Part shown: in pieces, positions 13,717 to 51,984 of the stretch | How positions within the stretch are numbered: the first letter of the stretch is position 1 | Layout of the letters: each line of letters opens with the position of its first letter | Source: Mytilus californianus | Taxonomy: Eukaryota | Length of the DNA: 64,000 nt | Assembly (NCBI RefSeq): GCF_021869535.1 | Contig: NW_026262723.1 | Span: 59,458,001-59,522,000, forward strand | Reading direction: 5' to 3' | Position numbers and translations under genes: made by a program | The notes under the pieces: model-generated | What the model saw: the letters and a program-made list of their open reading frames with translations, nothing else | Told to the model about the DNA's origin: nothing | Databases searched by the model: none

Positions 13717-14173
13717 CTACTGCTCAAAAGGCTCAGTTCTTATTGACACAACGTCGTTGTCCTCAACAATCTTAATAGTTTCTGCAACTTCATGGTGGGA
13801 TGAGCCTTTAACTTGTTTTCCATCGTCTGTGATTATTTTATCCAATTGTTTAAGACCTGCCTTTGCAGTATTGGAAGAAACATCTGACACGTGAAAAGGT
13901 TCAATTGATATTGACACAACGTCGTTGTCTTCAACATTCTTAAACATTTCTGCAACTTCATGGTGAGATGAGCCTTTAACTTGTTTTCCATCCACTGCGA
14001 TTATTTTATCTAACTGTTTAAGACCTGCTTTAGCAGCAGAACCACCGGTAACAACATCTGACACATAAATGTCGTCGTTAAAATCCTTTCCACCGATAAG
14101 ACGGAAACCATACCCAGACTCACAAGGTGACAGTAGCAATTCTTTTGATTTTGGGTTTGGGTTTGAAAAGGAT
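13717..14173 (-). CDS. B-box-PDZ gene 1, exon 2: PDZ domain plus duplicated PDZ C-terminal half
   Basis: Acceptor tttttcag|A TCC TTT (phase 2); GYGF carboxylate loop, then IYVSDV..G.AAKAGLKQLDKIIAVDG..V....H.EV = canonical PDZ; ends EPFEQ*. Confidence 0.88.
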
Positions 14174-14956
14174 CTGAAAAATATAAATAATTTCATTAAC
14201 TATTTTTATATTTTGAAATAATTAACATATACAATAAATACTTTTGATATATGAAAAAGGACATCCATTTTCAATATATGAATATTTGTAAATTATCATA
14301 GGTTATATATACGTTTTTAAAAACATACATCAAAAATAATGTGCTGATATTGTAGGGAAATGCATGTTTGTTAATACTCTTTTAAATATTTGAGTGATAG
14401 AATGCCTTGTTCATATATCATAAAAACTATTTTTCATAGATAACACATTGTTGAACTTGAAGACCAAAACCTATTTTTTGTTGATCCTGAATTGCTGATT
14501 ATTTTTTGCTGTTTATTGTTTCTCTCTATCTACTAGAAAAGAGATCCAATACACAAAGTGGATAACAATCATCATTTAAGGGCAATAACACTTTAAGGAC
14601 TCATCTAATGATTTGGTCATACTGATATTTTTGTAGAGTTTGTAAAGCTGATCATTTATTTGGTTTACAGTTGCTATTTATCTATCATTGTGTTTGAGAT
14701 AAAGGATAAAAGCACGACGATAAGACAAAAATAGTCCTGAATGAGTCATCCGATTGTTTCGGTCATTTAACATTTTTAGATTTTCTGTAAATTATCTGAA
14801 TACAAAATGTTAAAAAATTCAAAACACTTAAGTTTTTTTACCCCCAGGCGTGAATTGCCTTAGTCGTATTTTGGCACAACTTTTCGAATTTTCAGGTGTT
14901 AATGCTATTCATCTTTGTATTTGATTTGGCTTTCCAACTTTTCAATTCCAACAAAA

Positions 14957-14994
14957 CTGATGGATTTTTAGTAGACGAAGTGCGCGTCTGACGT
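14957..14994 (+). ncRNA. Degenerate type-I hammerhead motif (family A) in the B-box-PDZ-1 intron
   Basis: cugaugg-auuu uuagu agac-gaag-ugcgcg-uc-ugacgu; same family as 3888-3931, with several core mutations. Confidence 0.45.
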
Positions 14995-15389
14995 ATCAAG
15001 TTAAAAGCCTAGTATCTGTGATGAGTTTTACTTTACCTGTCTAGTATAGAACTGTTGCCTTTAATATCCTTTTAAATATAATAAGCAAAATGTTAAAAAT
15101 TAGCCAAAAAAAAATGTTAGGACATAAATCCTTATGTAGTCATCTCATATTTTTTGGTGAAAATAGAAAAAAAATTTGATCTTGACATTCTGAAATTTTT
15201 TTTCTGTCAGATTTTTTACTATGTAAGTGATAGCAAAATCTCACATTTCAAGGGTAGGTGAGCTAAAAACGCAAGAAACACACCGTACACCTGGCTGTTA
15301 TAATTTTGTTCAAACCCCGATATATAAGAACACGCATCACTGTTGTTATATTTTACCAACAGAATGAAAACAACACTTTTAAATTTCAT

Positions 15390-15431
15390 GCGTCCGAAGT
15401 GCTTTTCTGGATTCACCTTCATCAGGAACGC
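15390..15431 (-). ncRNA. Type-I minimal hammerhead ribozyme motif (family B), core intact
   Basis: Minus strand GCGUUC-CUGAUGA-AGGUGAAUCCA-GAAA-AGCACU-UC-GGACGC: stem I GCGUUC/GGACGC (6 bp with one GU), CUGAUGA and GAAA boxes, near-palindromic stem III AAGCACUU, UUC cleavage triplet; stem II is weak (GG/CC closed by an A-A mismatch). Confidence 0.6.
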
Positions 15432-15991
15432 TACGAGACGAATGTTTGAAAGCCAGGGATGTATAAAAACCGAAACATTTGGAGAGCTATATTACAAGGA
15501 AGGAAATTGAATACTTTAATGATGATTTCATCACTTCTTAAAGGAAATAAGATCTTAACCGTTTACTGAATTTAATACATAATTAAAGATATGCCTTTGT
15601 CGGTTAATACTGTTAACACAATACATTTGTCATCCGTAATATTTGGTATTATTCATATATCTTAAATACATCTTATATCCATTTTTTGTTTATAATATAT
15701 CAAAAATAATTTGCTGCATATAACATGATTTTAGGTTTATAGTATATGACAAATATCTTTTAAATAATATTAAACTTCATTTCAAATATTATGAATATTT
15801 CTCATATATTTATATTAGATTTAATAAATCATTAGATATATGTAAAATCCTGAATTTGAAGAGGGTGGTAAACCGTACTTGAAAGCTTGATACTTCTCCG
15901 ACTTGCATTTCTCTGACTGATTATAGTTGACTTTAACACACGTAATATACGAGTTGTTAATTTATTATTGATACCATCACTGATCACTTAC

Positions 15992-16758
15992 AAAAATTTG
16001 ATACGTCCTAGTAAACCCATGATGATTTTTTCGTCGACTGGTTGGGCACAATATGAAACCGCAGGGACATCAGGCAGGTTAGGAAGTTCCATTGCTTTCA
16101 TGTCATTGAGAAGTTTTTGAATTTCATGAATAGATGTTTCGGTTGCTTCTTTCTGTCCAATTTCATCTATCTGCTTTAGCCATTGTGTGAATGTACTTGA
16201 AATTGCATCCTGAAAACACATAGGATAATGGTTTCTCACGTTTTCACGAGATTTCTTTACGTTTTCAATTATTGCGTTAACCATTTTGTCAATACTAGAC
16301 TTTATCTTTGCACCTTGATTTGAAATTGCTCGCTCAAGCTTTTCGCTCTCCTTCTCATAAGACGTTGTCATTGATAACATGTCACCGCTTTTACGCTTGA
16401 AATCGCTAAAGATTCCTTTCATTGTTGTAGATGCTTGGTAGTGCAAGGATGAAAACATCTTATCAACTTCGTCCACGCTATGGCCATTGTGGTTTTCGAC
16501 TAGACAACCCTTACACAACGCAAAATCGCAATCTAAACACATAAACACATGTCGATCAACATGATTACATTTCAGCTGTTCCTCTACATCCTCTACATCC
16601 ACCTCGAAACTTTTTCCAAATACATGATTACGTGCAATCTTTAATCTTAGATGTGCAGTCTTGCAGCTGTAACAAAAGTACTGTCGACATTGTTTACAGT
16701 AATGTGATCCTGTTGCTTGAACACAAATTTCACAATTTCCAATTGGACATTGTGCCAT
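15992..16758 (-). CDS. B-box-PDZ gene 1, exon 1: RING-less B-box1 + B-box2 + coiled coil (TRIM-like); spliced product ~407 aa
   Basis: ATG at 16758 (MAQCPIG); B-box1 CEIC..CKQC.QYFCYSC..AH..RNH; B-box2 CNH..CLDC.FALCKGC..NHNGH; helical coiled-coil region; ends AAA TTT TT|gtaagt (phase 2), matching the PDZ acceptor. Confidence 0.9.
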
Positions 16759-18339
16759 TTTACTTTTATCATGTGTACGTTTCAAGTCGAATGTTTTACT
16801 TCCTGTTTATACAAGTGTCTATCTTATCTTTACACATGCTTTCCTTTTCCTTGAAAATACTATAATGATCTTATCATCATTTTGATTTTAATAAATTACT
16901 CTTAAGTAAAGTTCACACTATATACATTTGAACCTTATATTGACAATTGTGATAATGTTAACATATCAGCGTATAATTCTATAGATATAATTCTATATCT
17001 ATTATGGTGTTTAGATATTAGGCAATTACTTCAATTTTACCCTTATGTTCTATTTCCGCCATGGTGGCCATGTTGGTTGATTGAGAAGAGCGGAAAACAT
17101 ACAATTTATATAACATTCCCGGAAGGATCATTAAGTCCATGTGTAGTTGAAATTAGTCCAGTAGTTTTAAGAAAATTTTTAAAAAGCATACGACGACGGG
17201 CATCGATGAAGTACACCAAGTGATCGCAATAATTCATCTGGTCCATAGGACCTGGTTTTTGATTTGTTGAAATGTACGAATCTATTTGCAAATTATTTTT
17301 GTTTACTTTGAAAAACTAAACTTTGCTTCTTTTGGAATTACCTTCAGAAACATTAAAAACCTTAATAAAAAACATAATTGATATTTCAATACTCGAATAT
17401 CTCATAAAAAGCTGTCGATAATATACATCGTAGATGTTGTTAATAATTTTTCATACGGAAAAAGATTTTTCGCATCAAGTCATGAGAACAATATAAAATC
17501 TATAGTTATACATCGGTTTAAAGTTGAAACTTATCTGATAACTTCATACATCAAACTAGTGTTTAAGAGGGAAGGAAATACATATACAATCGTAACTACT
17601 CGGGCATTCTCGCTACACATACAATAGTATTATAGGCGTAGCCAAAATGGCCGAGTAGTTACATTTGAATTTATTTACTCGTTTCCGTTTAAAAAAGAAA
17701 AACTTTAATTTCCTTGATGCTTTAGATTCGTGTTAAGAACGATACAGATCTAAAGTTTCAAAGCCAATCAAAAAGTTTCAATTCGTTAGAAAAATTGTAA
17801 CGAAGTACACTCTATATGAACAAGTGAAACTAGCCCCAGACCACAATTAATGATCCCGCTTTTCGTTGTCCTTAATTACATGTAGTTCCCTTTAATTAAA
17901 GTGTATTTTTTCTTTATTTTTTTTCTTTCCTTTTCTCATACATTTCTTAGTTTTTATATGGTGGAAATGAAAGAAGAGAGCTGAAATAAATTTTTGGATG
18001 TTTTATTGTAACTGATTTTGATATGGAAAGAGTGATTAGGCCAGATGCAAAAAGGTAATATTTACAGTTTTCGGAACATCTCTCGATTAGTCCATAGGGG
18101 TATGGATGTGTATTGGCTAAATTTGTAAGATGTAAACGTTCAATTTTTCTGAAACTTGGATATATTTTTGGACTTGTACTGTACATTACACACACAAAAG
18201 ATTTGACAAAAAAAACAGGTAAACTTTTTTAATGCGACAAAACGTTATAAAGAACTAATAGGGGGAATTAATTGTGGTCTGTGGCCAACTGTATATAATT
18301 ATACTATGGAACGCCAAAACTGTCTTATTATGCCCATTT

Positions 18340-18960
18340 TCATTTTATGATGTGCATTTGCCTTTATATGATGTGCACTTGTCATTATATGATGTGCAAA
18401 CATACTCATATGATGTACAAACATCCTTATATGATGTGCAAATATACTTATATGATGTGCAAACATACTTATCTGATGTGCAAACATACTTATATGATGT
18501 GCAAATATCTTTATATGATGTGCAAATATACTTATATGATGTGCAAATATACTTATATGATGTGCAAATGTACTTATATGATGTGCAAACATACTTATAT
18601 GATGTGCAAATATACTTATATGATGTGCAAATGTACTTATATGATGTGCAAATATACTTATATGACGTGCAAACATCAATATATGATGTGCAAACACATT
18701 TATATAATGTGCAAATATCTGTATATGATGTGCAAATATATTTATATGATGTGCAAATGTACTTATATGAGGTGCAAACATACTTATATGATGTGCAAAT
18801 ATACTTATATGATGTGCAAATGTACTTATATGATGTGCAAAGATCCTTATATGATGTGCAAATATATTTATATGATGTGCAAATATCCTTATATGATGTG
18901 CATCTTCCCTTATATTATGTGCAGACATCTTTATATGATGTGGGTGTGTCATTATATTAT
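18340..18960 (+). repeat. 21-bp minisatellite (atatacttatatgatgtgcaa)n in the left arm
   Basis: About 29 degenerate units; produces ORFs 18274-19218, 18299-18973 and 18347-18970. Confidence 0.95.
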
Positions 18961-19329
18961 GTGCTTGTAACAATATATTATGTGGTGCGGTTTACTTCAT
19001 TATATGATGTCAAAACGTCCTTATATGATGTGCTTTCATCGTTGTTATGGTCAAAGAACATGATTACAATTAGAACGATTACTGTCTACGTCATAACTGA
19101 TTCCGATCTGCTTATCCGGAATTATTATAAACCCGGCTCAAATCTGAAGCTATCGTTTGGAAAATGGTTGAGGTTTTTAGAGATAAACATTGCATGGCAC
19201 GTTGGTACCTCGTTTTAAAGATGAAAGAAACACATCTGATATTATTGGAAAATTGTCAAAATATAAATTGCAAAGTTTAGGTTTATTCGATGGGTTTAAA
19301 ATAATGAACATACGGTGAAAGTGATTTAT

Positions 19330-19620
19330 TATGGGTCTTAGACTGTGTACTGAGCACCTGGAGTTCAAATAACCAGAGGATATTCTGCATTGTTTTTTTG
19401 AATGCCAGTTTCCTGTTTCTGATTTAGCAGCTCCAATCTCGTATCAGCTTCCGAAAGTGCATTTTATAGAAAAAGTGAGATAGTGCAATTTAATAAAAAA
19501 AATCAACGTTTCAAACATTTCGGAGGAAGATTTAGACCCATTAAAACAGGAGCTAGTTGAAAAATTTTCCCTGCTGCGGCGAAAATATGATAAAACAACT
19601 TTTATTGCAAAAGACAGCTT
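19330..19620 (+). pseudogene. Decayed HTH / pre-integrase transposase-like fragment
   Basis: With frameshifts: PEDILHCFFECQFPVSDLAA..VS.SES.FYRK..NVSNISEEDLDPLKQELVEK/FPCCGENMIKQLLLQK; the right arm reads ISEEDLNQLMQELFEEFP*CGENMIN. Resembles the ISD..LD...FP..GE.M motif that precedes the catalytic core of IS3-like integrase-core proteins (recalled). Confidence 0.55.
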
Positions 19621-19765
19621 TACCGGTATATGTATTCCCTCTTTCTGAATTGTCGCTTTATCTTAATTCTTTTCCTATACCAATTAGATCACAATAATTT
19701 TTAAAAGTATTTCATAACAATAGCTATAAAATTTTCTACTTATGCATAAGTAAACCGGTATGGAT

Positions 19766-20023
19766 AATTGATTGATTGATTGATGTTTTACGCCACTTTC
19801 AGCACTATCGTGCTATTTCGAGGCGGTCACTTTATATTGGTGGAGGAAGCCGTAGTGCCCAGAGAGAATCACCGACCATCGGTAGTAAAACTGACAGTCC
19901 TAGTCAATTAAGATTAGAGTCGAGCTTACCTGCCACATGTGTAATTCGAACTCACACCTTAAGTGTTGACAGGCTAGTGATACAGTAGTTATACTACTTA
20001 GACTACTCAGCCACCGATGACCC
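19766..20023 (-). mobile_element. Full-length tRNA-derived SINE
   Basis: Head ggggtcatcggTGGCTGAGTAGTctaag (A box) ... GAGTTCGAATT (B box); (aatc)n tail; 11-bp TSD ccggtatggat at 19755-19765 and 20024-20034. Confidence 0.85.
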
Positions 20024-20689
20024 CCGGTATGGATGAAAGGAGATATAGGATTAACTTGGTGCGTTACATTTGCGCACAGCTTTATATTACGTTTTCGCGC
20101 ATGTATTTTACAGCTTCAACTAGACAGTAACCCGCAACATAAAAGGTTTCGATGGAAGCCGTTCATATATACACCTCCAGACTCAAGAACTTAAAACAGC
20201 GCCAAGGTACCGACCAATCATTTTTTGTTTTTGGTGGGGGGGATGCATGTTTTTTTAAATGTTTGATTCCAGATATTGAAAAAGATATTATTTGTTTCAG
20301 AAGGAGAGCAAATAAAATAGATTGTTTCCATTGAAAATGTCTTTTCTATTTAGAGGCAGTTTCTTCTATAAGAAGTTGATACACAAATTTCAAATACAAA
20401 TGTATGATCATTTTTTGTAAATTTTGCCTTGCTGATCATTTTAGCTGTTCAAGTTTCTCGTTATATATTACTTTTCTCAAGATATTAGTAAAAAAAAGAC
20501 GCAATAATCGGCAAAAATCGGACACTGGGAGGGTGATGACTCCTGTAAGGGATCAGTCAGTTATAACCCCAAAAAGAAGGGATGAGGACCTTGAATTTTG
20601 GAATGGAAAGGTGGTATTCATTTTTTTATATTTATAAATTTGCAGCCGTATAATGGTATGGCGATGTCGTCGTCGTCCGAAGACGTTTG

Positions 20690-21505
20690 GTTTCCAGAAC
20701 ATAACTTGAGTATAAGTATATGGATCTCTATCAAATTGTACCACAGGGTTCAATACTACAAAAGGAAGGTTGGGATTGATTTTTTTTGTCTTAACTGTTT
20801 AGGAATTAGGGGCCAACAACAAGTATTTTTCTTGTTTCAGGAAAATCACTTGTGTATAAGTGTATGGATCTCTATGAAATTGTACCATAAGGTTCTATAC
20901 TAAAAAAAGAATGTTGGGATTAATTTTGGGGGTTATGGCCTTAACCGTTAAGGAAGTAGGGGCCTTTAATTTCTTGACCAATTTCAATAGGGTTAAATTC
21001 AAAGTCTTGAATTCTTGGGATCTTTAATATGTTGAATCTAACCGTGTAATTAGATTTTTGATTTTGGGCCCCGTTTTTAAATTGGTCCGAAATTGAGGTC
21101 CAAAGGGTCTAAAATTAATCCTTGTTCGATTTCATCAAAAAATGAATTATTGTGGTTCTTTGATATACCGAATCAAGCCGTGTATTTAGATTTTTTATTT
21201 TGGGCCTCGTCTTCAAATTTGTTCACATTAAGGTCCAAAGGGTCCAAATCAAACTTTGTTTGATTTCAACAAAAATTGAATTCTTGGGGTTCTTTGATAT
21301 GCTGAATCTAACTATATATTTAAATTTTGGGTATTGGACCAGATAATAGGTAAATGTCCAATTTCATTTTTTTAAGATGTTAGACCACATTCATTCTGTA
21401 TCGGAAATCTATGCTGTGTCAAATATTTGATCATTATCCAAATTCAGAGCTGTATCAAGCTTGAATGGTGTGTCCATACTTGCCCCAACTGTTTATGGTT
21501 CGATC
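20690..21505 (+). repeat. Element with internal tandem units (two ~144-bp units, then about three 134-137-bp units)
   Basis: Repeated acttg.gtataagt.tatggatctctat.aaattgtacca at 20704 and 20848; ttctttgatat..gaatc.a.cc at ~21019, 21156 and 21290. Confidence 0.7.
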
Positions 21506-22868
21506 CACACCCTACACCCCCCTACAGTAACAAAAATAGTTTTGACTCGAAACACATCAATTTTTTATAACCGGCATATCCAAATTAAGTTCCCTGAAGT
21601 CGCAAACAACTTCCACACTTAAAGTTCTAGATCTACTACTGACGCAATATTTTATACGTAAAATAGCAATAGAAATTTAATGCATTTTTTTTGAGAAATG
21701 CCCATTTTACAAATCTATATGAAAAATGTAGGGCTAACTATTTGGTCATTGCTCTAGATCGTGTATTGCTCATCATTTCAACTGTTTACAGTTTCTACCA
21801 AAAAAACATATTATTTCAAGCCAATTACTCCAACAATGATTCATCGCCGGAATAAATTTGGTGGAACTAGAAAGTACATGTAGGTATAGATCTTGACAAT
21901 CTGCGCAAGTTTTTAATGAAAAAGTGATTGAATAATACATTTCCCGTTGTTTTTCAATGGAAACTATGTGCCACTGTGATCAGAATCGGCAACCTATCAA
22001 TAGTAAATGGTAATCGTTGAAAGGGATCTCTCATCATTAATCTTATAGAGTTTCCAAACATATAGCTTTGCAGTTTCAGTGAAGAGGATTTTTAGAAATT
22101 GACCTGCCAAATTCAAAAATTGACTCCGGTGGTATTATTTTAACAAATCGGAACAAAATGAAGGTTTTTTGTATAGGACTTTCAATACATTATTCTTACA
22201 AAGATTTATTAAAATTGGCTGAGTGGTTTCAGAGAAGAAGAAAATGTGAAAGTTTACGGACGACGTATACTTAATGACGAGAATAGCTCACATGGCCTTA
22301 CAGGCCTGCATGACACCTATAGGCTTCAAAGATCATATGTCGCTCACCTAGGTCTATGTGCATATTCAACACTGGTTGGACTCTCTCTCCAACAACTTAG
22401 ACAAGAATAGAGTTCATGACAAAAATCTCTTTTTTTTATTGAACTTGTATTGCTGATCATTTTGTCTGTATACATTGTAGTTTCTCTCTATCGTCTTTAG
22501 TTTTTGCTCAAAACACAAAAGAGAGTAATAAAAAATGTCATTTAAGGGCTTCTTCTTCTTCCGAATACGAGAGTGGACTCATAGGTGGGATTGTAATAAT
22601 AATAAGAAAAGGGCAATGACGCCTATGAAGAGTGAGTCTTATTACTATAACGGCAAAATTTGACTATGTGGATCTTGCCTTGCTGATCATTTTTTTTATT
22701 TTTAAAAAGTTTCTTTTCATCTATTAACTACCTATTATAGTTTTTCATCATATAAGGCAAAATGCAAAAAAAAAGGTAAAAATCGTCATTAAAGGGTAAT
22801 GACTTCAATAAGGAGTCGTCGGAAATTTCCACCATATTATCTTAAATGTAGATCTTGGCTTGCTGATC

Positions 22869-23036
22869 NNNNNNNNNNNNNNNNNNNNNNNNNNNNNNNN
22901 NNNNNNNNNNNNNNNNNNNNNNNNNNNNNNNNNNNNNNNNNNNNNNNNNNNNNNNNNNNNNNNNNNNNNNNNNNNNNNNNNNNNNNNNNNNNNNNNNNNN
23001 NNNNNNNNNNNNNNNNNNNNNNNNNNNNNNNNNNNN
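22869..23036. other. Assembly gap (168 N)
   Basis: Run of N inside a ~150-bp-unit repeat; ORFs crossing it are artefacts. Confidence 1.
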
Positions 23037-23199
23037 TCGTGTCAACTGACGATTTCCACCGTGCAAACTTATTCGTAGATCTTGTATAGCTGATCATTTT
23101 TGCAACTTTATTTTTCTTTCTATCTATTATAGTTTTCAAGTTAATAGGCAAAAATGAAAACAACAATGGTAAAATTTGTCATTTAAGGGCAAAAAGGAC

Positions 23200-23550
23200 A
23201 AAAGCTTTGACGTTCCTGGATAATTGGTAGAGCTCAACATTCCAAACATTTTTGATCTATCAGATATTCTCTATTTATAACGATTTTCAAAATAATAGAC
23301 AAAACTTGCATTTTACCCCTATGTTTTATTTTTAGCCATGTCGGCCATCTTGGTTGGCAGACGGGGTCATCGGACACATTTTTAAACATGATACCCCGAT
23401 AATGATTGTGGCCAAGTTTAGTTAAATTTGGTCCAGTAGTTTCAGAGGAGAAGATTTTTGTAAAAGTTAACGGCCGACGACTACAACGGACGACGGACGA
23501 CGACGACGGACGCCGGACGACGAGTGAAGTGAAAAGCTGACTTGGCTAAT
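23200..23550 (+). repeat. Interspersed repeat (gccatcttggttgg...ggacgacggacgacg family)
   Basis: Degenerate copies at ~13240-13470, 17030-17300 and 22030-22310. Confidence 0.65.
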
Positions 23551-25129
23551 AACAGTTACTATTGGAAAACTGGACTTTATTTAAAAAAAAAATTAACATC
23601 CTCAATCCTCAAGCTTAAATGATTACGGAGCCCTGTTGTAAAGTCCAGAGCTTGAGTTGTAAAAGAAATTTATATCTACTGAGCTGAACATTATATCTAC
23701 ATCGCTTGACTTTATATCTATAGCGCTTGATTCTACTTCTCCAGCGCTTCACTTTAAAAAAAAACACAACTCTCTTTCTGTATGAGACCAAAAGGCCTCA
23801 GTAAACAATGATTTTTTTTGTTATGTTCATTTAGACACCAATCGTCCTAGCTTTGCTTACAAGGATCCGAAAACGCTCTATTCTATTTTCTGTTTTAGAG
23901 ACCATATGTGATTCTCTGGTTTTGTCGGATTGATACACACCTTCAAAAATTTAAAGGCTGAAATTACCAGAAGAGAAAGAGGCTTAGACACAGGATCTGT
24001 ATCTTAATCAGATTGGTTAGGCACCGACTATTCATCTTTTGTGGGTGGGAACATGTGTATTTCCTTGGGCTCAGGTCAAACATATTTTTCGACTTTAATA
24101 AAAAAAAAATTTTCAATAACATAATTTTTTTTTTAATTTCATTCTTGTTTTTATTTTTTCCCTCGTTTTCAATGGAAACAAACTATTTTTTCGCTTCCCT
24201 TCTGAAATAAATAGTCTTTTTCAAGAAATTTGGAATCAAACATTTAAAAAAAATCCGGGCACTACGGCTTCCTCCATCAATATAAACTGACCGCCACGAA
24301 ATAGCACGATTGTGTTGAAAGTGGCGTTAAACCCCAATCAATTAATCAATCAATCAATCAATCAATCAATTAATCACCCAAACCGGTATAATTATGCATG
24401 AGTAGATAATTTTATAGCTATTGTTATGAAATACTTTAAAATGACTGTGATTTAATTGGTGTCTTTTGCAATAAAAGATGATTTATCATATTTTCCCCGC
24501 ATCAGGGAAATTCTTCAAATAGCTCCTGCATTAATTGATTTAAATCTTCCTCCGAAATGTTTAAAACGTTGATTTTTGTTAAATTGCACCGTCACATTTT
24601 TTCTATAAAATGCACTTTCGGAAGCTGCTACGAGGCTGGAGCTGCTAAATCAGAAACAGTAAACTGGCATTAAAAAAAATGCAGAATATCCTCTGGTTTA
24701 TGAAATATTTGAACTTCGGGTGCTCAGTACACAGTCAAGGACCCATAATTTAATAACTTTCACCGTATGTTCATTATTGTAAACCCATCGATTAAACCTA
24801 AACTTTGCAATTTATATTTTGACAATTTTCCAACAATATCAGAATGGTTTTTTCATCTTTAAAACGAGGTACCAACGTGCCAATGTTTATCTCTTTTAAA
24901 ATCTCAACCACTTTCCAAACAATAGATTCAGATTTGAGCCGGGTTTGTAATAATTCCGGATAAGCAGATCGGAATCAGTTATGACGTAGACAGTAATTGT
25001 TCTAATTGTAATCCTGTTCATTGACCATAACAACGATGAAAACACAGCATATAAGGACGTTTTGACATCATATAATGAAGTAAACCGCACCACATAATAT
25101 AATGTAACAAGCACATAATATAATGACAC

Positions 25130-25500
25130 AACCACATCATATAAGTATATTTGCACATAATATAAGAATGTTAGCACATCATATAAGTACATTTGCACAT
25201 CATATAAGTATATTTGCACATCATATAAGTATATTTGCACATCATATAAGTATGTTTGCACATCATATAAGTATGTTTGCACATCATATACGTATGTTTG
25301 CACATCATATAAGTATATTTGCACATTATATAAGGATGTTTGCACATCATATAAGTATATTTGCACATTATATAAGGATGTTTGCACATCATATTAGTAT
25401 ATTTGCACATCATATAAATATGTTTGCACATCATATAAAGTTGCTTGTACATCATATAATGACAAGTGCACATCATATAAAGGTAAATGCACATCATATA
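25130..25500 (-). repeat. 21-bp minisatellite in the right arm (inverse of 18340-18960, fewer units)
   Basis: (ttgcacatcatataagtatat)n, about 17 units. Confidence 0.95.
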
Positions 25501-28500
25501 ATGAAAATGGGCATAATAAGACAGTTTTGGCGTTCCATATTATTCTACTGAACTACTGGTCTTTCAAGAATTATGACTTCTTTAGTGTTGATATAATTTC
25601 TGACACGCATTGTATTTGCGGTTGTAAGAAGGCACATTAATTCTTCTTATAATGCCTATTATACAAAATCCAAAGAGAAATTCTGATAAACAATCTTAGT
25701 TTGATTCCTGATGACAAAATAGTTTGAAAGATATGCAACATGAAAAGTTACTTGCATAACATTCAAAATCATTTATTTGTATACACTCATAATAACCTAT
25801 TGCTTTCATCTACATATGACAAACTATAGTAGGATGGTCTGACTTTTTTTTATAATTGTTATTTCTTTTTTTTACTGAAATCGCTCAAAAGTAAAACGAA
25901 TTTCTTTGTTTTTACTTTAGTTCATTCTTAAAATGAACAAGTGACTTGGAAGAGAAATTTCATGTAAACATTTAAACATTTTGTCAACATTTTGTGGGGT
26001 TAAGCTAGTTTTTTGTGGAATGGTTCCTTGTATATTTTCCAAATATCCAAATATAACTGACCAATCAAAACATTCAAGCTTATATTTACTTAGAGGCCCT
26101 TCCAGGGTATAGAAAAATGTGGAAGAAGTTATATGTTATTCTAAAATACAAAAAGTTTTCAATGATCAACACAAAAATAGTTATTAAAATAACTTGCCTT
26201 CATTCTATATTTTGGAATAAAAGTATTTTAAGGGTATATTCAACTTTTATAACTCAAAATAATGTTTTGTTGATAATAACTTTCTTTCACTTATATAAAC
26301 TTACCTTATATATCTATGTCAAGCTTCAGTTTCATGACTTACTAGATAAAATGTCTATTTCATTACACTTTACCGCATAATCACTCGTAAACACCCACCT
26401 AATTCACTAAAAAAAATTCAATCCCAACTGGCTTCCATACCTACCGTGGTACTACTGGATGCAAGGTAAAGAAGCCTTTCTATCGCCACTGTAAAGAATA
26501 AGAGGTTCAAAATCAATTTCGCAGATATGACAAAAAGAGGCTAGTTCTAGGACACCTTCGACATGACATTTTTTTAGGGCATTTTTGTAGAATGTTTAAA
26601 TGTAACATTTGATCGATTTAATAGAAATGTTTTATCATATTACTCCCAGTTTTTCCAATGAAATTAAAGCAAACTTTGTAAACTGATATTTATTTATTGC
26701 ATCAGATATTATGATACATGCAAAGTTGGTAACAACATTATTGAAACATGGGATTGAACTACCTAATCCTGACTGTAGCCATTTGTGTTCAATTCGTTCT
26801 TCATAACATTTTTTGGTTTATAAGCTTTGAATTTTTCAAGTTTTTGATTTCATCGAGCATCACTGAAGAGATATCTGATTTGGCCTTTTTAAGGTCCTAT
26901 TTGGTAATATAGCTTTTCAATTGTTTTGGTTCTTGTACATCCTTGGCTTTCAAATATTAGGCTTTGAATGTTCCTGATGAAGATTTGAACAAAACATGAC
27001 TGATTCATATACAAACCCTTAATTGAGTTTTGTGATATAGACTGTATTTTGAACCTAATCTAAACATCTCCCTCTTCCTTGATTTTTATCTTCCCTCGAG
27101 CTTGGATTATAGTTTTCCATAGTTATGTAACGAAATAATTTAAGATCAAAACACAATTTATTCCCAAATGACACGATATTGTAATACCAACCATATGTAC
27201 TCAGTTTTCTTATTTATTTTGACATAACAAAAAGCGGTCTTGGATGCATTAAAACAAGATTGAGATCAACATCCCGTATATATAAAGTAACTTTTTATCT
27301 ATATTTCCCAAAAAGTAAAGCTGTGATCAGAAAGGGTTGTTGTTTGCATGCTGGTGTGAATTCCTATGCAAAATGAGTATTGTGCATTTCCCTTTACAAA
27401 ATAAGGAGATGAGGTATGATTGCCAATGAGACAACTATCCACCAAAGTTCAAATAAAGTGGATGAAAGCAATTATAGGCAACCGTTCGGCCTTCAACAAT
27501 GAGAAAAACCCATACCGTATATAAAAAGTTCCGACATGAAAAATATGAATCAATTAAATTGAGAAAACTAACGGCCTAATTTATAACAAAACAATTAACG
27601 AAGAACAAATATGACAGACATGAACCAACGACAACCACTGAACTACAGGCTTCTGACTTGGGACAGGCACATACAGAATGTGGCGGGGTTAAACTTGTTT
27701 GTGAGCGCTCAATCCTCCCCATAACCTGAGACAGTGGTGAACAGCACAACTTAAGAACAAACTATAAAAATCAGTTGAAAAAAGCTAACTTATCAGATCG
27801 ATACAATTAGAAAAACATCAAACATAAACACAGACTGGACGTGGCAGGACATTTTTCCATCCCTCATCCGTAACAACAAAAGGACACTAAGTACAGTTCT
27901 GAGAGTACTCGCAGTTACTGACAGCTAATTCAAAGCCAATAACAACTGATAAAAAAAATCATGTATCTAAGACTAAAATATCAATCAGTACACATCCAAC
28001 ATCCATGGATTTAGTGTAAAGACGTCATTAACAGTCAGAGAAAAACCCGACCTTGTGCTATGCCAAAATTGACAGATTGAGTACCTTTTAAGTGCATATG
28101 TGTATAACAGAACTATTGTATGATTTTGATTTACTGATAACTAAATCAATATTTATACCAATAAAAAAAAATATTCAAAGATCTAATTTGCCCACTTTTA
28201 TAAGTCTGAGGTTGTCCTATAGACCAAGAGTTTAGATTCCTGGTATTGTTATCTTAAATACTCCGCTAAAAAGATTTGGAAAACACCCGGTTTATAGTGT
28301 CTTTGAACTTGTATTTCTCATGAAGTAGAGCTATTGTAAATATGAAAATGACTCTAGGCATCTATGTTGCTCTTTTTTTTTGCATGTTAACACATCACCG
28401 GATTTGTACTTACATGAGCAACACGACGGGTGCCAGCGTGTAACAGGATATGCTTACTCTTTCGGAGCACCTGATACCACCCCCACTTTTTGGTGGAGTT

Positions 28501-29984
28501 CGTGGTGCTCTGTCTTTGGTTTTCTATGTTGTTTTGTGTACTGTTGTTTGTCGGTTTGTCTTTTTCTTTTTTGGCCATGGCGTTGTCAGTTTGTTTTCGA
28601 TTTTTGAGTTTGAATGTCCCTTTGGTATCCTTCTCCTCTCTTTTGTCCTGACTATGTTTAGTATATGTTGATTATGCATCTCTCTTTGTCTGTTTGTATT
28701 AGGCTTATGTTGTCAAAATGTTTCGATTCTGAACTGTGATGTTGAATAATACAAAAAACAACATTAGGATCATCGTCCGTTTAAAGTGTCTTTGAATTTG
28801 TATTTTTCATATGTTGAATAAGAATAAGGTTTCTGGTTTCTTGTTGTTTTTGCATGTTGTTTTGACTTTGTGTATCGTATGTCAGTTGTGCAATTTTTCT
28901 AGTGGTTTTCATTAGTCTAAATAATTGTGTTAACAAGATCTTTTCGACTTCTGGCAAATTTTGTCGCTTTGATATTCTTCTACATATATATTCATGAAAT
29001 GTCAGATCGGGTGTTCTCAATATTTTAAAACGTCATTTTCCTCGAAGTATCACGTCCAATTATTCGCTCCTTTTTTAAAGGGTTAATCAATTTGTGTATA
29101 CATAGATAAGAATAATGTATAACCTTTCCAGTGGTAAGCCCGTAGATTAAATAATAAACCAATTTTTTCTTTACCAAGAATGAAATAACTAACTTATAAA
29201 TTGTTAAAAAAAAAAAAAACATTTTCCTTGTGTAATTTCATTTTGTTGTATATATAAATAAATGGATAACAAATAGATCAAATATCTTCAATGGGATCAC
29301 TCAACTTACAACTAATAACAAAAATTGTCACTGGTTTCTAAATAATTCATCATAAGAGTTTCTCGGTGATAATAAGACACATAGAACATACAACAATATA
29401 TGGTAAAGTTTTTTGTTTTTTTACAAACATAATTTATAAAAGATGTAAAGCATATTTATACATTTATTCCATCTATGGTTGTCAGCTTTGCCAATGTATT
29501 CCAGAGTTGTAAACTAAACATCCTCAACTAGGTGTGTTGGAACAAAAGCTTATACTGCCACTCGTTCTATAAGTCAAATGATGTGTTCATTTTATTAGTA
29601 ATATGATTGTTATTCACATTTCTGGGATCTTCGCCAAATACACAGGATAAAGATGAAGAAGCAGTCAATATGTTGTTACTTATACAGCTTCGATACTGAA
29701 CAGTGAATTTTTTTTTAGAATTTATTGTTTTATTCTATATTTAAATAAAAAAAATAAGTGATTACAAAAATTAAAACAATAAATAAGGTGAATAAATTAA
29801 AAAAGTTTTAAATGCCAATTGTTTTTTCAAGTTCCATTATTTAATTTTTCTAATGTTTTTTTCAAAATTTTACCAACGATTTATTTTATTGATTTTGATA
29901 TTTCGTCAAAAAATGAAATTCTGAATAATTTGAATCAGATATTAACAAAATAGTACGAAAACAATGTTTATAATACACACAAAT

Positions 29985-30273
29985 CTACTGCTGAAAAGGC
30001 TCAATTGTTATTGACACATTGTCTTTGCCTTTCGCATTCCTAAATATGCTTGTAACTTCACCGTGTGTCAGGCCTTTAGTTTGTTTTCCATCCACTGCGA
30101 TTATTCGATCAAATTGTTTAAGACCTGCCTTAGCAGCAGGGCCATCAGAGGAAACATAAGACACGTATACGTCTTCATTTACATCCTTTCCACCGACAAA
30201 ACGTAAACCATACCCAGACGATTCAGGTACCAGAAACAAACCTTTCGATTTTGGGTTTGGTTTCGAAAAGGAT
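29985..30273 (-). CDS. B-box-PDZ gene 2, exon 2: single PDZ domain
   Basis: Acceptor ttttcag|A TCC TTT (phase 2); SGYGLRFVGGKD..VYVSYVSSDGPAAKAGLKQFDRIIAVDG...LTHGEV..VSITIEPFQQ*. Confidence 0.9.
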
Positions 30274-31874
30274 CTGAAAATCATAATAGATTTCATTAAC
30301 ATATATATCTGATCATTTTAAAAATTGTATTTTTAATTTTCTACCTTTATATTTAAGTGTTGTTAAAATAACAGGCATAGGCACGAAAATTAGTAAAAAA
30401 ATCATCATGTAAGGGCTATAACTCTGTAAGGATTTATGCAATGGTTTCGGTTATTTGACAATATAATTTTTGAGATAATAGGCAAATGTATTAACATGTA
30501 TCCATACATATTCAAATACCACTTACAAGTATCAAATATTATAGACCGAGTATCATGTCCTCAAAAGAGTGTTTAAAATGAGGCAATTATTTGAATCAAT
30601 TTAATAGATAGATGAGTAAATAATGGTTTGATTTTCCTTTGTCGAAATGAACATGATGAATCTCTCCTAATTACAATGTATGGTTTATAATTTTTATTGA
30701 TCATTATATTAATTCATATATGCAATATGCTACTTTTATATCAAGACCATACGAAATATTTATATAATTGTTGTTTCTTTCATTGAAAATATATATATTA
30801 AGCTATGTATCATATATTATAAATATTTCTCCTTTAGGGCCTATATATTAAAGATACTCAATTGATGATATATGTAAAATCTAGAATAATGATAGGGATG
30901 GTAAACTATATGGATGGAGAGTTGTCTCATTGGCACTCATACCACATCTTCTTATATCTATATACTTGATTGCTTGATACTAACCCGCTTTTCGTTTCTT
31001 AGACAGATTATAGTTTACTCTAACACACGTCATATAAATACAAAAATAAACCAGCTTTCCAATGGCAAGAAAAACAAGTGGAGATAATATGAAAATATAA
31101 GCCGCTTGCTGGCGCTCTTTGATTCAATACATTGTTTACTCAACAGTCCCTTCGAAAACCCATTATCTCTTATAATCCGCCATTTTCTACATTTGAAAAT
31201 GCCTGTACCAAGTCAGGAATATGACAGTTGTTGTCCATTCGTTTGATGTGTTTTGTCTTTTGATTTTGCCATGTGATTAGGGACTTTCCGATTGAATTTT
31301 CCTCGGAGTTCAGTATTTTTGTGATTTTACTGTTTTTTATAAAAAAGTAAATTAATCGTCTTTATTTCATCAACAAATGTTGTAAATAACTCATATCATA
31401 AACTGATTTTATGAATTAAATATATGTTGAAGTTCAAAAAACTAAAAGATAAACTTCGAAATCCGAATTAAATACCGTTGCGACGCGTAGCTTTTTAGTT
31501 TCCGGGTAGTTCAAAGCTGGCACAATTTTGTTCTGGTGGATGAATATATGTACGAGGCGGTGTAATGATAATTTTGAATGTGCTTTTCTCATTGTAAAAA
31601 GTTCAAGAACGTTTCCAGCACCGATTAACGAGCAAAATTTCCCTAAGTATCACGATTGAAAGATTTCCCCTCCTAATATCCTGATCTTTACTGCCTTTTT
31701 AAGGCTTCCACATTAATAGAAAAACAGAATACAATTTCAAATGATGTTAGCAGATTTTAAGTGTGAATATTATGTCAGGTTCTTGAAAAAAAACGTTGTT
31801 TTCCAGATGTGAAAAAACGAAATAATTGGTATACAGTTGTTAAATTACTATAAATGGAAGCACCTATAACTTAC

Positions 31875-32632
31875 AAAAATTTGACACCTCCTAGTAAATC
31901 CTTGATGATGTTTTCGTCGACTGGTTTTGAACGATATGTAACAGTAGGTACATCAGGCAGGTTTGGAAGTTCCATTGTTTTCATGTCATCGAGAAGTTTC
32001 TGAATTTCAAAAACAGACGACCCGGTTGCTTTTTTCTGTCCAATTTCATCTAACTGCTGTTGCCATTTTTTGCATGTAGTTGAAATTGCATCATCAACAC
32101 ACGTAGGATAATGTTTTTTCACGTTTCCACGAGATTTCCTAACGTTTTCAATAATTGCGCTAACCATTTTGTCAACACTAGACTTTATTAGTTCACCTTG
32201 TTTCGAAATCGCTCGCTCAAGCTTTTCGCTCTCCTTCTCATAAGACGTTGTCATTGATTTCATGCCACCGCTTTTTCGCTTAAAATCATTTACGATTCCT
32301 TTCATTTTTGTAGATGCTTGGTCGTGCAAAGATGAAAATATTTTATCCAAATCCTCCACGCTATGGCCATTGTGGTTTTCGACTAAACAAGCCTTACATA
32401 ACGGAAAATCGCAATCGTTACACATAAACATTTGTCGATTAATATGCCTACAGTAAAACTCTTCCTCTTGGCCTATCTCGTTTCTTTTTCCAAATACATG
32501 ATTACGTGCCATATTTGATCTTAGATGAGCAGTCTTACAGTTGTTACAAAAGTATTGTCGGCATTGTTTACAGTACTGTGATCCTGGTGCTTGAACACAA
32601 ATTTCGCAAGTTCCAATTGGAGATTGTGCCAT
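31875..32632 (-). CDS. B-box-PDZ gene 2, exon 1: RING-less B-box1 + B-box2 + coiled coil; spliced product ~348 aa
   Basis: ATG at 32632 (MAQSPIG); same B-box Cys/His pattern as gene 1; ends AAA TTT TT|gtaagt (phase 2). Confidence 0.9.
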
Positions 32633-33262
32633 TTTCCTTTTATCGTATAGACGTTGAAACCGAAAAAGCACGAATATCTATACTTCCTGTTTATCCCAGT
32701 GTCAATTGCATCTCCTCATATGTTTTCCTGTTCCAGGAAAATACTATCATGTTCCTAATCACTATTGTTATTTTGTAAGTTGCGGTAATTACTTTTACAT
32801 GGTATAAATTTCAATGGTATCTTGTGTACTATTATGAGTTTTGCATATTAACGTAAAAATGGTTCATGTGGAGTACGATTCATGTAATAAGAGACAGGTG
32901 CTATATGATGAGCTCCCCATGTATATAAGTGCATGTTTGCTCTACTTATCATCATATTTTCGGTTATTATATATAAAATTTTGCGAGAAGTCGTATGCTA
33001 CTCAGATACAAACTTGCGGGAAATCGTATGCAGCTTTAATTTGAAAACATTACCCTACGTGTGTTGATGATGCAATTTCAACTACATGCAAAGCAATACG
33101 TTATTTTTTAAAAGTCCCAACGGAAATTTAAAAATATATATATAACTGACATCTGACAGACTAATGAAACCCCTTGTCATTGATAATTATTCAATGTGTT
33201 ATTATCTTGCGGCCTACACCTTTTTTGTTTCTGCATTCATGATGTTAACTATCCGTTAAAAA

Positions 33263-39909: not shown

Positions 39910-40992
39910 CTATCAATTTTTTAAAGGAAAGAAATCAATAACATTCATCCTGTAAACATTAATAACATATGTATGAAGGAAATGTTGGGTAAGAGTAAAT
40001 GGCATAGCCACCCCAAAACACTTATTTGTTCGAAAATATTATCTATGGATTACGGCATGTCCAATATGACAAGGTATCAACATGAACCTAGATGGAATGT
40101 GGTAATTCTATTTTATTCTAGCTTTTGTGATTGAATTCCAGAATGAGTTAGAAATCATCACCAAATACCTGAATAGAAATGTTAACCCAATTCCCACTAC
40201 AAAAAAAAACAAAACAAAAACAAAAAAAAAAAAACACAAATAACTATAAAAAAAAAAACAATCAACGAAACATAATTCATAAACATTGAAACTTTTGTTG
40301 ACCAACTTTCATAACGAATACCCCAGAGAGCACCGTTCCATTCTATGCTGTTTTTGCAAGATATATTAGTTTTTTACTCGGAAGAGCATGAACACATTTT
40401 GCATGGTTCAACCAGTTTTGTGGGAAGATTTGTTCCTTGTATCCTTTCGATTTGTATAACAGACGACGAGAAGTATATACTTTATAAAAAAAAATTTATA
40501 AAACAAAAGCTCGAAACCCATTATGGTTAATTGTTCGACGTATTATTACATTGCGCCTACACATTTCGAGGTTTCATGTTACAAGTGTAAATGATACATT
40601 TCAGTTGTATGACTAACATGTTCACTATTGTGATGTGTGTGTGGTACAAAACGAAATTATTGGTTTTCTATCTTTTACCAACTAGGTGTAAATACGAAGA
40701 AACAAGCAGATACAAAAATGATGCTTGCTTTATTAGAAAAGTTAAATGGCTAAATTTTATGAAACATTTATCAAAAAAAAAAAATCATTAATATTTGTTA
40801 ATTGGTTTTATTTTGATAAGAAATTATCTTTTGATAAGTTCGAAAAGTCTTCATATAAAATTCGTATTATTAAAATGAATTTCAAAATGAAAGTTCAAAT
40901 TAAGATCCATTATTTAAATATTCAAGCTCATCTTTTTGTATTCATACAAAGATTAACAAATGTTAGTGGCTATGGTATCAAAACAAACTTAC

Positions 40993-41205
40993 AGGTGTTT
41001 GTGGTTTATGTTCAAAATCTACTTTAAGTTCATCCAGTCCCTGAGACAGACGTCGTGTCTGTATTTTCAGCCTCAATTCGTCTTTTAATAAAGGCAATAA
41101 AGACTTTCTTGCAACTGACTCTTTTGCACGGTCATAAAGATCATTGTCAAAATTGTGAGCATCAGATGGCAGTCTAAATACTCTTTCATTTTCTTTGCGG
41201 TCCAT
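40993..41205 (-). CDS. bZIP-2 coding exon 1 (167 aa total)
   Basis: tttcaag|aATG; MDRKENERVFRLPSDAHNFD...LLPLLKDELRLKIQTRRLSQGLDELKVDFEHKPQTP|gtaagt; 213 nt. Confidence 0.9.
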
Positions 41206-51049: not shown

Positions 51050-51771
51050 CTATAAATTTATGAAAAGGAAAAAATTAGTAGTTGTATACATTTACGTGAA
51101 GTTATTCTTTCTCCAGTCTCCTGAAATGTTTTGTTTTGCCCGAATACCACTTTTTGACGGTTTGTGCATGTATTAAGCAACACCGAGAGGATTAAGATTG
51201 TATAGCCTTTCAGAGAATCTGAGTTCAATCCAGGGTTTAGTGAGGTTCCTGTTGCCCAATCTTTAGTTTTCTATATGGTTTTATAAATGACTTCTGTTTT
51301 TTTAGTGTTTTGTATGTTATTCGACGTATGGTTTCTGACTGCCTCTTGTCATTTCATATTTTTCTTCGAGTTTTTGCAATATTTTCTTGTTTTATTTGGA
51401 ATTATTCATCTTAAATTAAGTTCTGACTTTACCTATCGCTACCCTCACACAATATCAAAAGAATATTGGATGAAAACTTTATACTCTTCTAGTTATTGAA
51501 AAAAAAATAAATACATGTAATTCTAGCTATAATTTGTACTCTCAGATCTCTTGAATGCATTCATTAATCTGATGTATTTTGAAACATATTTAGACATAAA
51601 GTTTAAACAATCCAAACTTCAATGTTTTTTTTTTTTGCTTGACCCATAATTTGCAAATAAAGTTATAATGAAAAAAAAATACCAAAAATGTTTAGACTAC
51701 AACTTGAGAAAACTGAATATAATTATATGATATACGCAAGAAATATAGTTTTATAATTGTAAGTAACTTAC

Positions 51772-51984
51772 AGGGGATTGTGGTTTGCTTTCAAATTCTA
51801 CTTTTAGTTCTTCTAACCCTTGAGATAGACGTTTAGCTTGTATTTTAAGTTTTATTTCATCTTTCAGAATTGGGAGTAGTGACTTCGTTTCAACCGATTC
51901 CTTTGCCCGATTGAAGAGATCGGGATCATAGTTGTACGCATCGGACGGTAATCGTAGTAAATTTTCGTTTTCCTTTCCCAACAT
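51772..51984 (-). CDS. bZIP-3 coding exon 1 (169 aa total)
   Basis: tttcag|aATG; MLGKENENLLRLPSDAYNYD...LLPILKDEIKLKIQAKRLSQGLEELKVEFESKPQSP|gtaagt; 213 nt. Confidence 0.9.

Follow-up and report, generated by a model that had tools for sequence, protein, structure and literature searches.

Tandem RING-less TRIM-like genes of Mytilus californianus in which a B-box/coiled-coil exon is spliced to a PDZ exon

In the mussel Mytilus californianus, two stretches of the same chromosome each carry an open reading frame (ORF) for a pair of B-boxes and, separately from it, an ORF for a PDZ domain, and the question raised by this locus is whether each pair of ORFs belongs to a single protein and, if so, what kind of protein that would be. 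We analysed a window of 64,000 nucleotides (NCBI RefSeq assembly GCF_021869535.1, contig NW_026262723.1, positions 59,458,001 to 59,522,000 of the forward strand), in which all positions given below are counted from the first letter. A first-pass annotation made from the letters alone had placed B-box and PDZ ORFs at positions that agree with the ORF list, and had proposed that in two paralogous genes they are exons of one real spliced product. The splicing of the B-box/coiled-coil exon to the PDZ exon was confirmed in both genes, by a transcript contig bearing directly on the second (gene 2) and by a RefSeq model together with conservation for the first (gene 1). We consider it likely that the two genes are tandem paralogues from a small subfamily, so far found only in Mytilus, of a RING-less TRIM-like family, that they combine a shared cassette exon with a PDZ exon, and that their products may serve as bivalent scaffolds.

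Genes 1 and 2 lie on the minus strand, on the 117.9-Mb record JAKFGE010000007.1 (gene 1 at ~59.47 Mb), and each consists of two coding exons separated by a GT-AG intron in phase 2. Coding exon 1 of gene 1 runs from the ATG at 16758 to 15992 (767 nt, residues 1-255 plus 2 nt) and encodes B-box1 (16624-16734) and B-box2 (16480-16569), recognized by Pfam and by their ligand patterns, and then the coiled coil; an intron of 1818 nt (14174..15991, GTAAGT...TTTTCAG) separates it from coding exon 2 (13717..14173), which holds a complete PDZ domain (~13897-14148), a partial PDZ copy and the stop codon. In gene 2, coding exon 1 extends from the ATG at 32632 to 31875 (758 nt, residues 1-252 plus 2 nt), with B-box1 at 32498-32608, B-box2 at 32363-32452 and the coiled-coil helices at 31892-32350; the intron is 1601 nt long (30274..31874, GTAAGT...TTTTCAG), and coding exon 2 (29985..30273) comprises 1 nt, residues 254-348 and the stop, with the PDZ domain at ~29997-30248. 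The 3' untranslated region of gene 2 extends past 29900 in the transcript contig. Exon 1 of both genes ends AAA TTT TT, directly followed by GTAAGT (last exon bases 15992 and 31875), and exon 2 starts A TCC TTT, directly preceded by TTTTCAG (first exon bases 14173 and 30273); since exon 1 measures 767 or 758 nt from the ATG, the junction is in phase 2 in both. These are the letters and the phase given at first pass for 15992/14173 and 31875/30273, and the lengths then predicted for the products (~407 and ~348 residues) proved exact: the spliced products of 407 and 348 amino acids are identical, residue for residue, to the M. californianus RefSeq proteins XP_052068243.1 (LOC127707647; gene 1) and XP_052067969.1 (‘tripartite motif-containing protein 45-like’; gene 2).

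RNA evidence was sought in four public runs (X1, X2, X5 and X21) aligned to 29900-32800, that is, to the gene 2 locus only. A 1344-nt contig from X1 spanned 32653-31875 and resumed directly at 30273-29900, so omitting exactly 1601 nt whose CT..AC ends on the plus strand correspond to GT..AG on the minus strand. The same 31875/30273 joint was present in X2, another sample of the same study, with one side 29 nt shorter. The first-pass annotation had named junction-spanning RNA across 31875-30273 as a check on its proposal, and contigs from two samples thus supplied it. Coverage in X1, X2 and X5 was confined to exons, apart from two short high-copy intronic repeats, and the part of the intron adjoining the donor (bins 31452-31839) had zero contig coverage in all three runs.

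In the contig runs the two intronic repeats, at 30911-30966 and 31195-31321, reached a summed depth of 10^4-10^5, and they attracted hundreds of reads in X21; their loose ends enter unrelated sequence, which argues that they are fragments of a very abundant or highly expressed repeat and not of the gene 2 transcript. Upstream of gene 2, ~400 bp before its ATG, a 49-nt inverted copy (33044-33092) is 98% complementary to 32069-32117 of the coiled-coil exon, with similarity at the protein level over 32985-33092, and it could pair with that exon if the two were co-transcribed.

For gene 1, the RefSeq model, the conserved splice sites and selection argue for the same fusion. The gene pair is syntenic in Mytilus coruscus and Mytilus galloprovincialis, with bZIP genes alongside, and in both of these species the orthologues keep unbroken ORFs and the splice sites; both types of protein are also annotated in Mytilus edulis and Mytilus trossulus. 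The two orthologues lie 5.6 kb apart in M. coruscus and 3.8 kb apart in M. galloprovincialis, with no gene called between them. We estimated the ratio of nonsynonymous to synonymous substitution (dN/dS) between M. californianus and M. galloprovincialis by the Nei-Gojobori method with bootstrap intervals. For gene 2 the ratio was 0.23 over the whole gene (0.14-0.36), 0.17 in the B-boxes (0.05-0.49), 0.25 in the coiled coil (0.14-0.50) and 0.28 in the PDZ domain (0.10-0.68); for gene 1 it was 0.42 over the whole gene (0.31-0.58) and 0.36 in the PDZ domain (0.19-0.68). Both genes are thus under purifying selection, gene 2 being the better conserved and gene 1 the more relaxed. The synonymous divergence between the paralogues (dS 0.25) is no larger than that between orthologues (0.24-0.33), although the duplication is older than the species split; this suggests that it occurred shortly before that split or that gene conversion has taken place.

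The N-terminal module of both proteins is of TRIM type. Pfam recognized zf-B_box in two stretches of each exon 1, and the zinc ligands are complete, in B-box1 as C-x2-C-x7-C-x2-C-x4-C-x2-C-x3-H-x8-H over residues 9-45 and in B-box2 over residues 61-90 (gene 2) or 64-93 (gene 1). When the proteins were aligned with 21 B-box-only relatives, the 18 invariant columns were the start methionine, one glutamine and the cysteines and histidines of the B-boxes. A profile of the module, searched against the PDB, matched the RING/B-box/coiled-coil (RBCC) structure of TRIM28/KAP1 (6H3A) with an E value of 5e-24 across B-box1, B-box2 and the coiled coil (~210 positions), and the next matches were TRIM25, TRIM3, TRIM72 and TRIM5. 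An AlphaFold2 (AF2) monomer model built from a 60-row alignment had a mean predicted local distance difference test (pLDDT) score of 84.7 (an 8-sequence alignment gave 52.9 and was unusable) and comprised two B-boxes, a helix of ~104 residues (95-198, pLDDT ~90), helices at 204-218 and 240-247, and a PDZ domain at 262-345. The shapes nearest to it in the ESM Atlas belonged to the TRIM71, TIF1, TRIM56 and TRIM9 clusters, and a feature search of the same Atlas gave no usable match. PDZ domains filled the whole-model matches of Foldseek and VIA-align, and the N-terminal part was therefore assessed by the PDB-sequence profile and by Atlas shape. In the predicted structure B-box2 thus leads straight into a coiled coil that is followed by fold-back helices, as in TRIM/RBCC proteins.

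What the module does not contain is a RING. Neither protein gave a RING match in Pfam or showed a RING ligand pattern, and an upstream RING exon was considered and rejected, as no such pattern occurs in open frames of the same strand within 6-7 kb upstream. The gene 2 transcript contig begins at 32653, 21 nt before the ATG, and upstream of the ATG the reading frame stays open for only 39 nt, to 32671. Both the description of the proteins as RING-less and the order B-box1, B-box2, coiled coil and PDZ put forward in the first-pass annotation were upheld, the former by Pfam and ligand-pattern scans and the latter by Pfam, the profile and the AF2 model.

The C-terminal module is a PDZ domain in both proteins (Pfam E values 3e-14 and 2e-11), and the predicted domain superposed on solved PDZ domains with Z scores of 14 and above and root-mean-square deviations (rmsd) of 1.4-2.1 Å; the best scores were a VIA-align Z of 14.7, with an rmsd of 1.6 Å over 88 residues, and a Foldseek template modelling (TM) score by target of at most 0.88. 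The carboxylate-binding loop reads GYGL from residue 273 in gene 2 and GYGF from residue 276 in gene 1. The first residue of helix αB is a histidine, which in gene 2 (His323) falls in the same alignment column as its counterparts in PSD-95 PDZ3 and Scribble, and a histidine at αB1 is the signature of class I PDZ domains. Loop and histidine together predict binding of class I tails, [S/T]-x-hydrophobic-COOH. The structural neighbours of the domain include PDZ domains crystallized with tails of human papillomavirus (HPV) E6, human T-lymphotropic virus 1 (HTLV-1) Tax, hepatitis B virus (HBV) core and NleG8. The ATF3-like bZIP proteins encoded next to the genes were considered as PDZ ligands and rejected, because they end in ...YVQN or ...MKAA, which are not class I motifs.

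Exon 2 of gene 1 has been enlarged by a tandem duplication of 168 bp (13726..14036, minus strand, 1.9 copies, 88% identity), and as a result residues 352-407 (13720-13887) form a partial second PDZ running from part of βC through βF. Lacking βA, βB and the binding loop, it cannot be a complete PDZ domain on its own. The repeat is old, being present in the orthologues of 405-408 amino acids in M. galloprovincialis and M. edulis and also in M. coruscus, and its dN/dS is ~1 (interval 0.45-3.9), about the neutral rate.

How widely the combination occurs was examined with a word-based search using a family alignment and with an exhaustive hidden Markov model (HMM) search of 1.84 billion representatives. 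Among the best 150 matches, full-length B-box-PDZ proteins came from Mytilus only, and the other top matches were multi-PDZ proteins or B-box/coiled-coil proteins without a PDZ domain; the nine of these latter kinds that were looked up by name were all from Mytilus or nameless. A third paralogue, 38-44% identical to genes 1 and 2, lies on the same chromosome at 33.5 Mb, 26 Mb away (LOC127707574), and has the same two-exon, phase-2 structure; its M. edulis counterpart, XP_071130657.1, is intact at 345 amino acids.

The origin of the architecture is best approached through the closest relatives that have no PDZ domain. These are XP_052075947.1 (‘TRIM33-like’, from another M. californianus chromosome) and XP_071141956.1 (‘TRIM71-like’, from M. 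edulis), whose first coding exons end 767 and 773 nt from the ATG, at a phase-2 donor (GTAAGT or GTAAAT) with an in-frame TAA, an arrangement shared by genes 1 and 2 and the third paralogue; the 3' exons after them are short and unrelated. Since exon 1 ends in the same way in B-box-only relatives, the intron after the coiled coil belongs to the family as a whole, and the PDZ exon can therefore be seen as a phase-compatible module placed on a shared cassette exon. Genes 1 and 2 sit within a large, expanded family of Mytilus B-box genes. The PDZ domains of the three paralogues are one another's closest relatives, which points to a single acquisition; most likely, one event of exon shuffling joined the PDZ exon to the cassette in the common ancestor of the three paralogues. 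No donor gene could be named; the best PDZ domains outside the family were at most 39% identical. Another relative sharing the cassette, VDI33877.1 of M. galloprovincialis (665 amino acids), is annotated with NID, PARP14-type RRM and C-type lectin domains behind the coiled coil, and is either a further swap of the 3' module or a fused gene model.

A number of points weigh against the reading of the locus given above, and the first of them concern expression. Direct RNA evidence is limited to gene 2; the runs X1, X2 and X5 were labelled ‘RNA?’ by guess, and it is from their exon-only coverage that we infer them to be RNA; read depth was low, at ~9 on the exons of gene 2; and X21, a true RNA-seq run, gave no reads on these exons, although, as only ~6% of the run was read, empty exons say nothing about silence. 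The donor, moreover, includes an in-frame TAA, so that an unspliced transcript would give a protein of B-boxes and coiled coil only. The first-pass annotation had argued for the fusion from the conservation of its junctions. The donor is indeed kept, but it is weak proof of the join to PDZ, because B-box-only relatives share it and its conservation is expected whatever lies downstream; the conserved acceptor, the PDZ frame and stop, and the spliced contig are better evidence. It could be argued from the TAA within GTAAGT that the main product is a B-box/coiled-coil-only protein, made from unspliced or intron-polyadenylated transcripts, and that the PDZ isoform is minor or tissue-restricted. 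Consistent with this, the exon 1 ORFs of both genes end ...KFL and a stop exactly at the donor, the closest relatives are B-box/coiled-coil proteins of ~255-320 amino acids, and X5 covers both exons with no joint reported. However, no contig coverage enters the intron by way of the donor in X1, X2 or X5, the spliced form is the only one seen across the junction, and the PDZ exons are under purifying selection (dN/dS 0.28 and 0.36), with their frames and stop positions kept in three species and three paralogues. We regard such a truncated main product as quite unlikely.

Further points of the same kind concern constraint and the integrity of the family. The dN/dS between gene 1 and gene 2 is 0.69, and that of the coiled coil between M. 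californianus and M. coruscus is ~1 or above, albeit from few substitutions, so that constraint must be called moderate. Gene 1 carries the extra, incomplete PDZ copy, which evolves at a near-neutral rate and looks non-functional. In the M. californianus assembly the third paralogue reads M-A-Q-stop, with a TAG at codon 4, and the RefSeq model of LOC127707574 consequently starts 30 codons downstream, without B-box1. Taken with the whole-gene ratio of gene 1 and the low expression, the premature stop and the neutral repeat might indicate that one or both genes are decaying duplicates, whose models reflect automated annotation and not function. Yet neither ORF is broken, and neither has lost a zinc ligand or a PDZ motif; M. 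coruscus and M. galloprovincialis retain both genes with their splice sites, and M. edulis and M. trossulus have annotated proteins of the two types; the bootstrap intervals exclude 1 for both whole genes, and gene 2 is transcribed and spliced. Decay of either gene therefore seems to us very unlikely.

The last of these points concerns novelty. RefSeq and UniProt already list the two genes and their relatives, from five species of Mytilus, with B-box and PDZ calls. The novelty claimed in the first-pass annotation accordingly holds in so far as the architecture is undescribed in the papers found and has so far been seen only in Mytilus, but not with respect to the databases; our search found no publication describing a B-box-PDZ architecture, within a literature coverage that was incomplete.

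Our working hypothesis remains that of a protein joining B-boxes, coiled coil and PDZ. By analogy with solved TRIM coiled coils, its long helix would pair antiparallel with that of a second chain, and the fold-back helices would bring the two PDZ domains toward the middle of the rod, giving a dimeric, PDZ-presenting scaffold. The pair of PDZ domains may act as an adaptor for class I C-terminal tails. As it lacks a RING, the protein would have no RING E3 ligase activity of its own; the adaptor may assemble through its B-boxes or pair with RING-bearing relatives, in the manner reported for the RING-less TRIM16, which is reported to homodimerize through its coiled coil and to heterodimerize with other TRIMs (PMC3357404). 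The locus thus offers a candidate for a scaffold with two PDZ domains, and its ligands could be sought by screening.

The ligands of such a scaffold might also be foreign. The genes could encode fast-evolving immune sensors or decoys, in which the PDZ domain captures class I tails of pathogens and the B-box/coiled-coil part assembles or recruits RING TRIMs, under diversifying selection. The family has been seen in no genus but Mytilus, and the B-box family to which it belongs is massively expanded; the paralogue dN/dS of 0.69 and the coiled-coil ratio of ~1 or above between sister species could reflect such selection; the structural neighbours of the PDZ domain include some crystallized with viral or bacterial effector tails (HPV E6, HTLV-1 Tax, HBV core and NleG8); and RING-less TRIM16 is reported to heterodimerize with other TRIMs (PMC3357404). 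Nevertheless, the dN/dS of the PDZ domain between orthologues is clearly below 1, and the raised ratios, based on few substitutions, are explained just as well by relaxed constraint. We consider this immune reading unlikely. A bolder form of the idea, a Mytilus-specific innate-immune module in which an antiparallel dimer with two class I PDZ pockets would catch viral or parasite tails and, by way of mixed coiled coils or of assemblies of B-boxes, pass them to RING TRIM paralogues, strikes us as improbable; if it were true, the module would restrict pathogens by the logic of TRIM5, but recognize them through a PDZ domain.

The remaining features of the window lie around and between the two genes, all of the bZIP exons being on the minus strand. 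Exons of an ATF3-like bZIP gene are found downstream of gene 1 at 212-403, 1000-1149 and 1750-1983, and two further copies of a bZIP exon upstream of gene 2 at 40987-41178 and 51766-51957; in some older models, of 692 and 585 amino acids, the bZIP gene and gene 1 are merged. An assembly gap (22869..23036) falls in the 13-kb intergenic stretch, 6.1 kb upstream of the gene 1 ATG and 6.9 kb downstream of the gene 2 stop; it is crossed by no exon or intron of either gene and is irrelevant to the B-box-PDZ finding. It is bracketed by two inverted arrays of a 21-bp satellite with similar flanks (18274-19218, 27.6 copies, and 24896-25551, 17.6 copies), and this inverted structure accounts for most of the extra intergenic length relative to M. 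coruscus and M. galloprovincialis. No Rfam family reached its gathering score anywhere in the window, and 15200-15650, a part of the gene 1 intron, gave no Rfam hammerhead ribozyme match even at E values of up to 10.

Where do these proteins stand among known systems? Their nearest counterparts are the RING-less B-box proteins of Mytilus annotated as ‘TRIM71-like’, ‘TRIM33-like’, ‘TRIM45-like’ or ‘wech-like’, which are 24-30% identical in the N-terminal module and have the same MAQ start. These B-box-only relatives likewise have the cassette exon, its phase-2 donor with an in-frame TAA, and no RING, but, unlike those of genes 1 and 2, their 3' exons encode tails of ~35-40 residues with a C-x2-C motif in place of a PDZ domain. 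The mussel cassette thus provides an example of exon shuffling within a lineage-specific expansion, one phase-2 exon accepting different 3' exons. The reach of the finding is limited: databases already list the genes, their small subfamily has so far been met in a single genus, and no long-standing question is opened. The architecture represents a further exchange of the C-terminal part within a modular family that is very large and specific to the lineage.

TRIM28/KAP1, TRIM25, TRIM3, TRIM72 and TRIM5 resemble the mussel proteins in having B-boxes and one long helix with fold-back helices; compared with these solved TRIMs, the mussel proteins have no RING and carry PDZ in the place of PHD-bromo, SPRY, NHL or filamin. 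The vertebrate proteins TRIM16, TRIM29, TRIM14 and TRIM44 also combine one or more B-boxes with a coiled coil in the absence of a RING, but their C-terminal parts are SPRY or nothing rather than PDZ, and they show no orthology to the mussel proteins. The C-terminal module of the latter falls outside the recognized TRIM classes C-I to C-XI. Indeed, the first-pass annotation had stated that PDZ is not among the C-terminal modules by which TRIMs are classified, and two papers on TRIM classification bear this out, as the word ‘PDZ’ is absent from both (PMC3503706, PMC2533329).

On the side of the PDZ domain, the class I domains of NHERF/PDZK1 type and those of Scribble, MAGI and PSD-95 have the same fold (TM 0.8-0.88 by target, rmsd 1.5-2.5 Å) and share the G-Y/L-G-F/L loop and the αB1 histidine with the mussel domains, but at only 25-39% identity. 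A zinc finger of the ubiquitin system is combined with PDZ domains that choose targets by their C-terminal tails in the LNX/PDZRN ligases (PMC5679597). LNX, however, has a RING and several PDZ domains but no B-box and no TRIM coiled coil, whereas the mussel proteins have B-boxes, a coiled coil and one complete PDZ; the resemblance is one of analogy only, and the mussel proteins lie outside the RING-PDZ class.

The replacement of one TRIM C-terminal head by another kind of binding domain also has a counterpart in TRIM5-CypA (TRIMCyp). That fusion arose by retrotransposition of CypA and keeps its RING, whereas the mussel genes have a cassette without a RING and attach the PDZ exon to it by splicing. 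In TRIMCyp the C-terminal recognition module of a TRIM has been replaced by an unrelated binding domain (PMC6677749), and with the Mytilus genes described here PDZ is added to the C-terminal heads carried by TRIM-type scaffolds.

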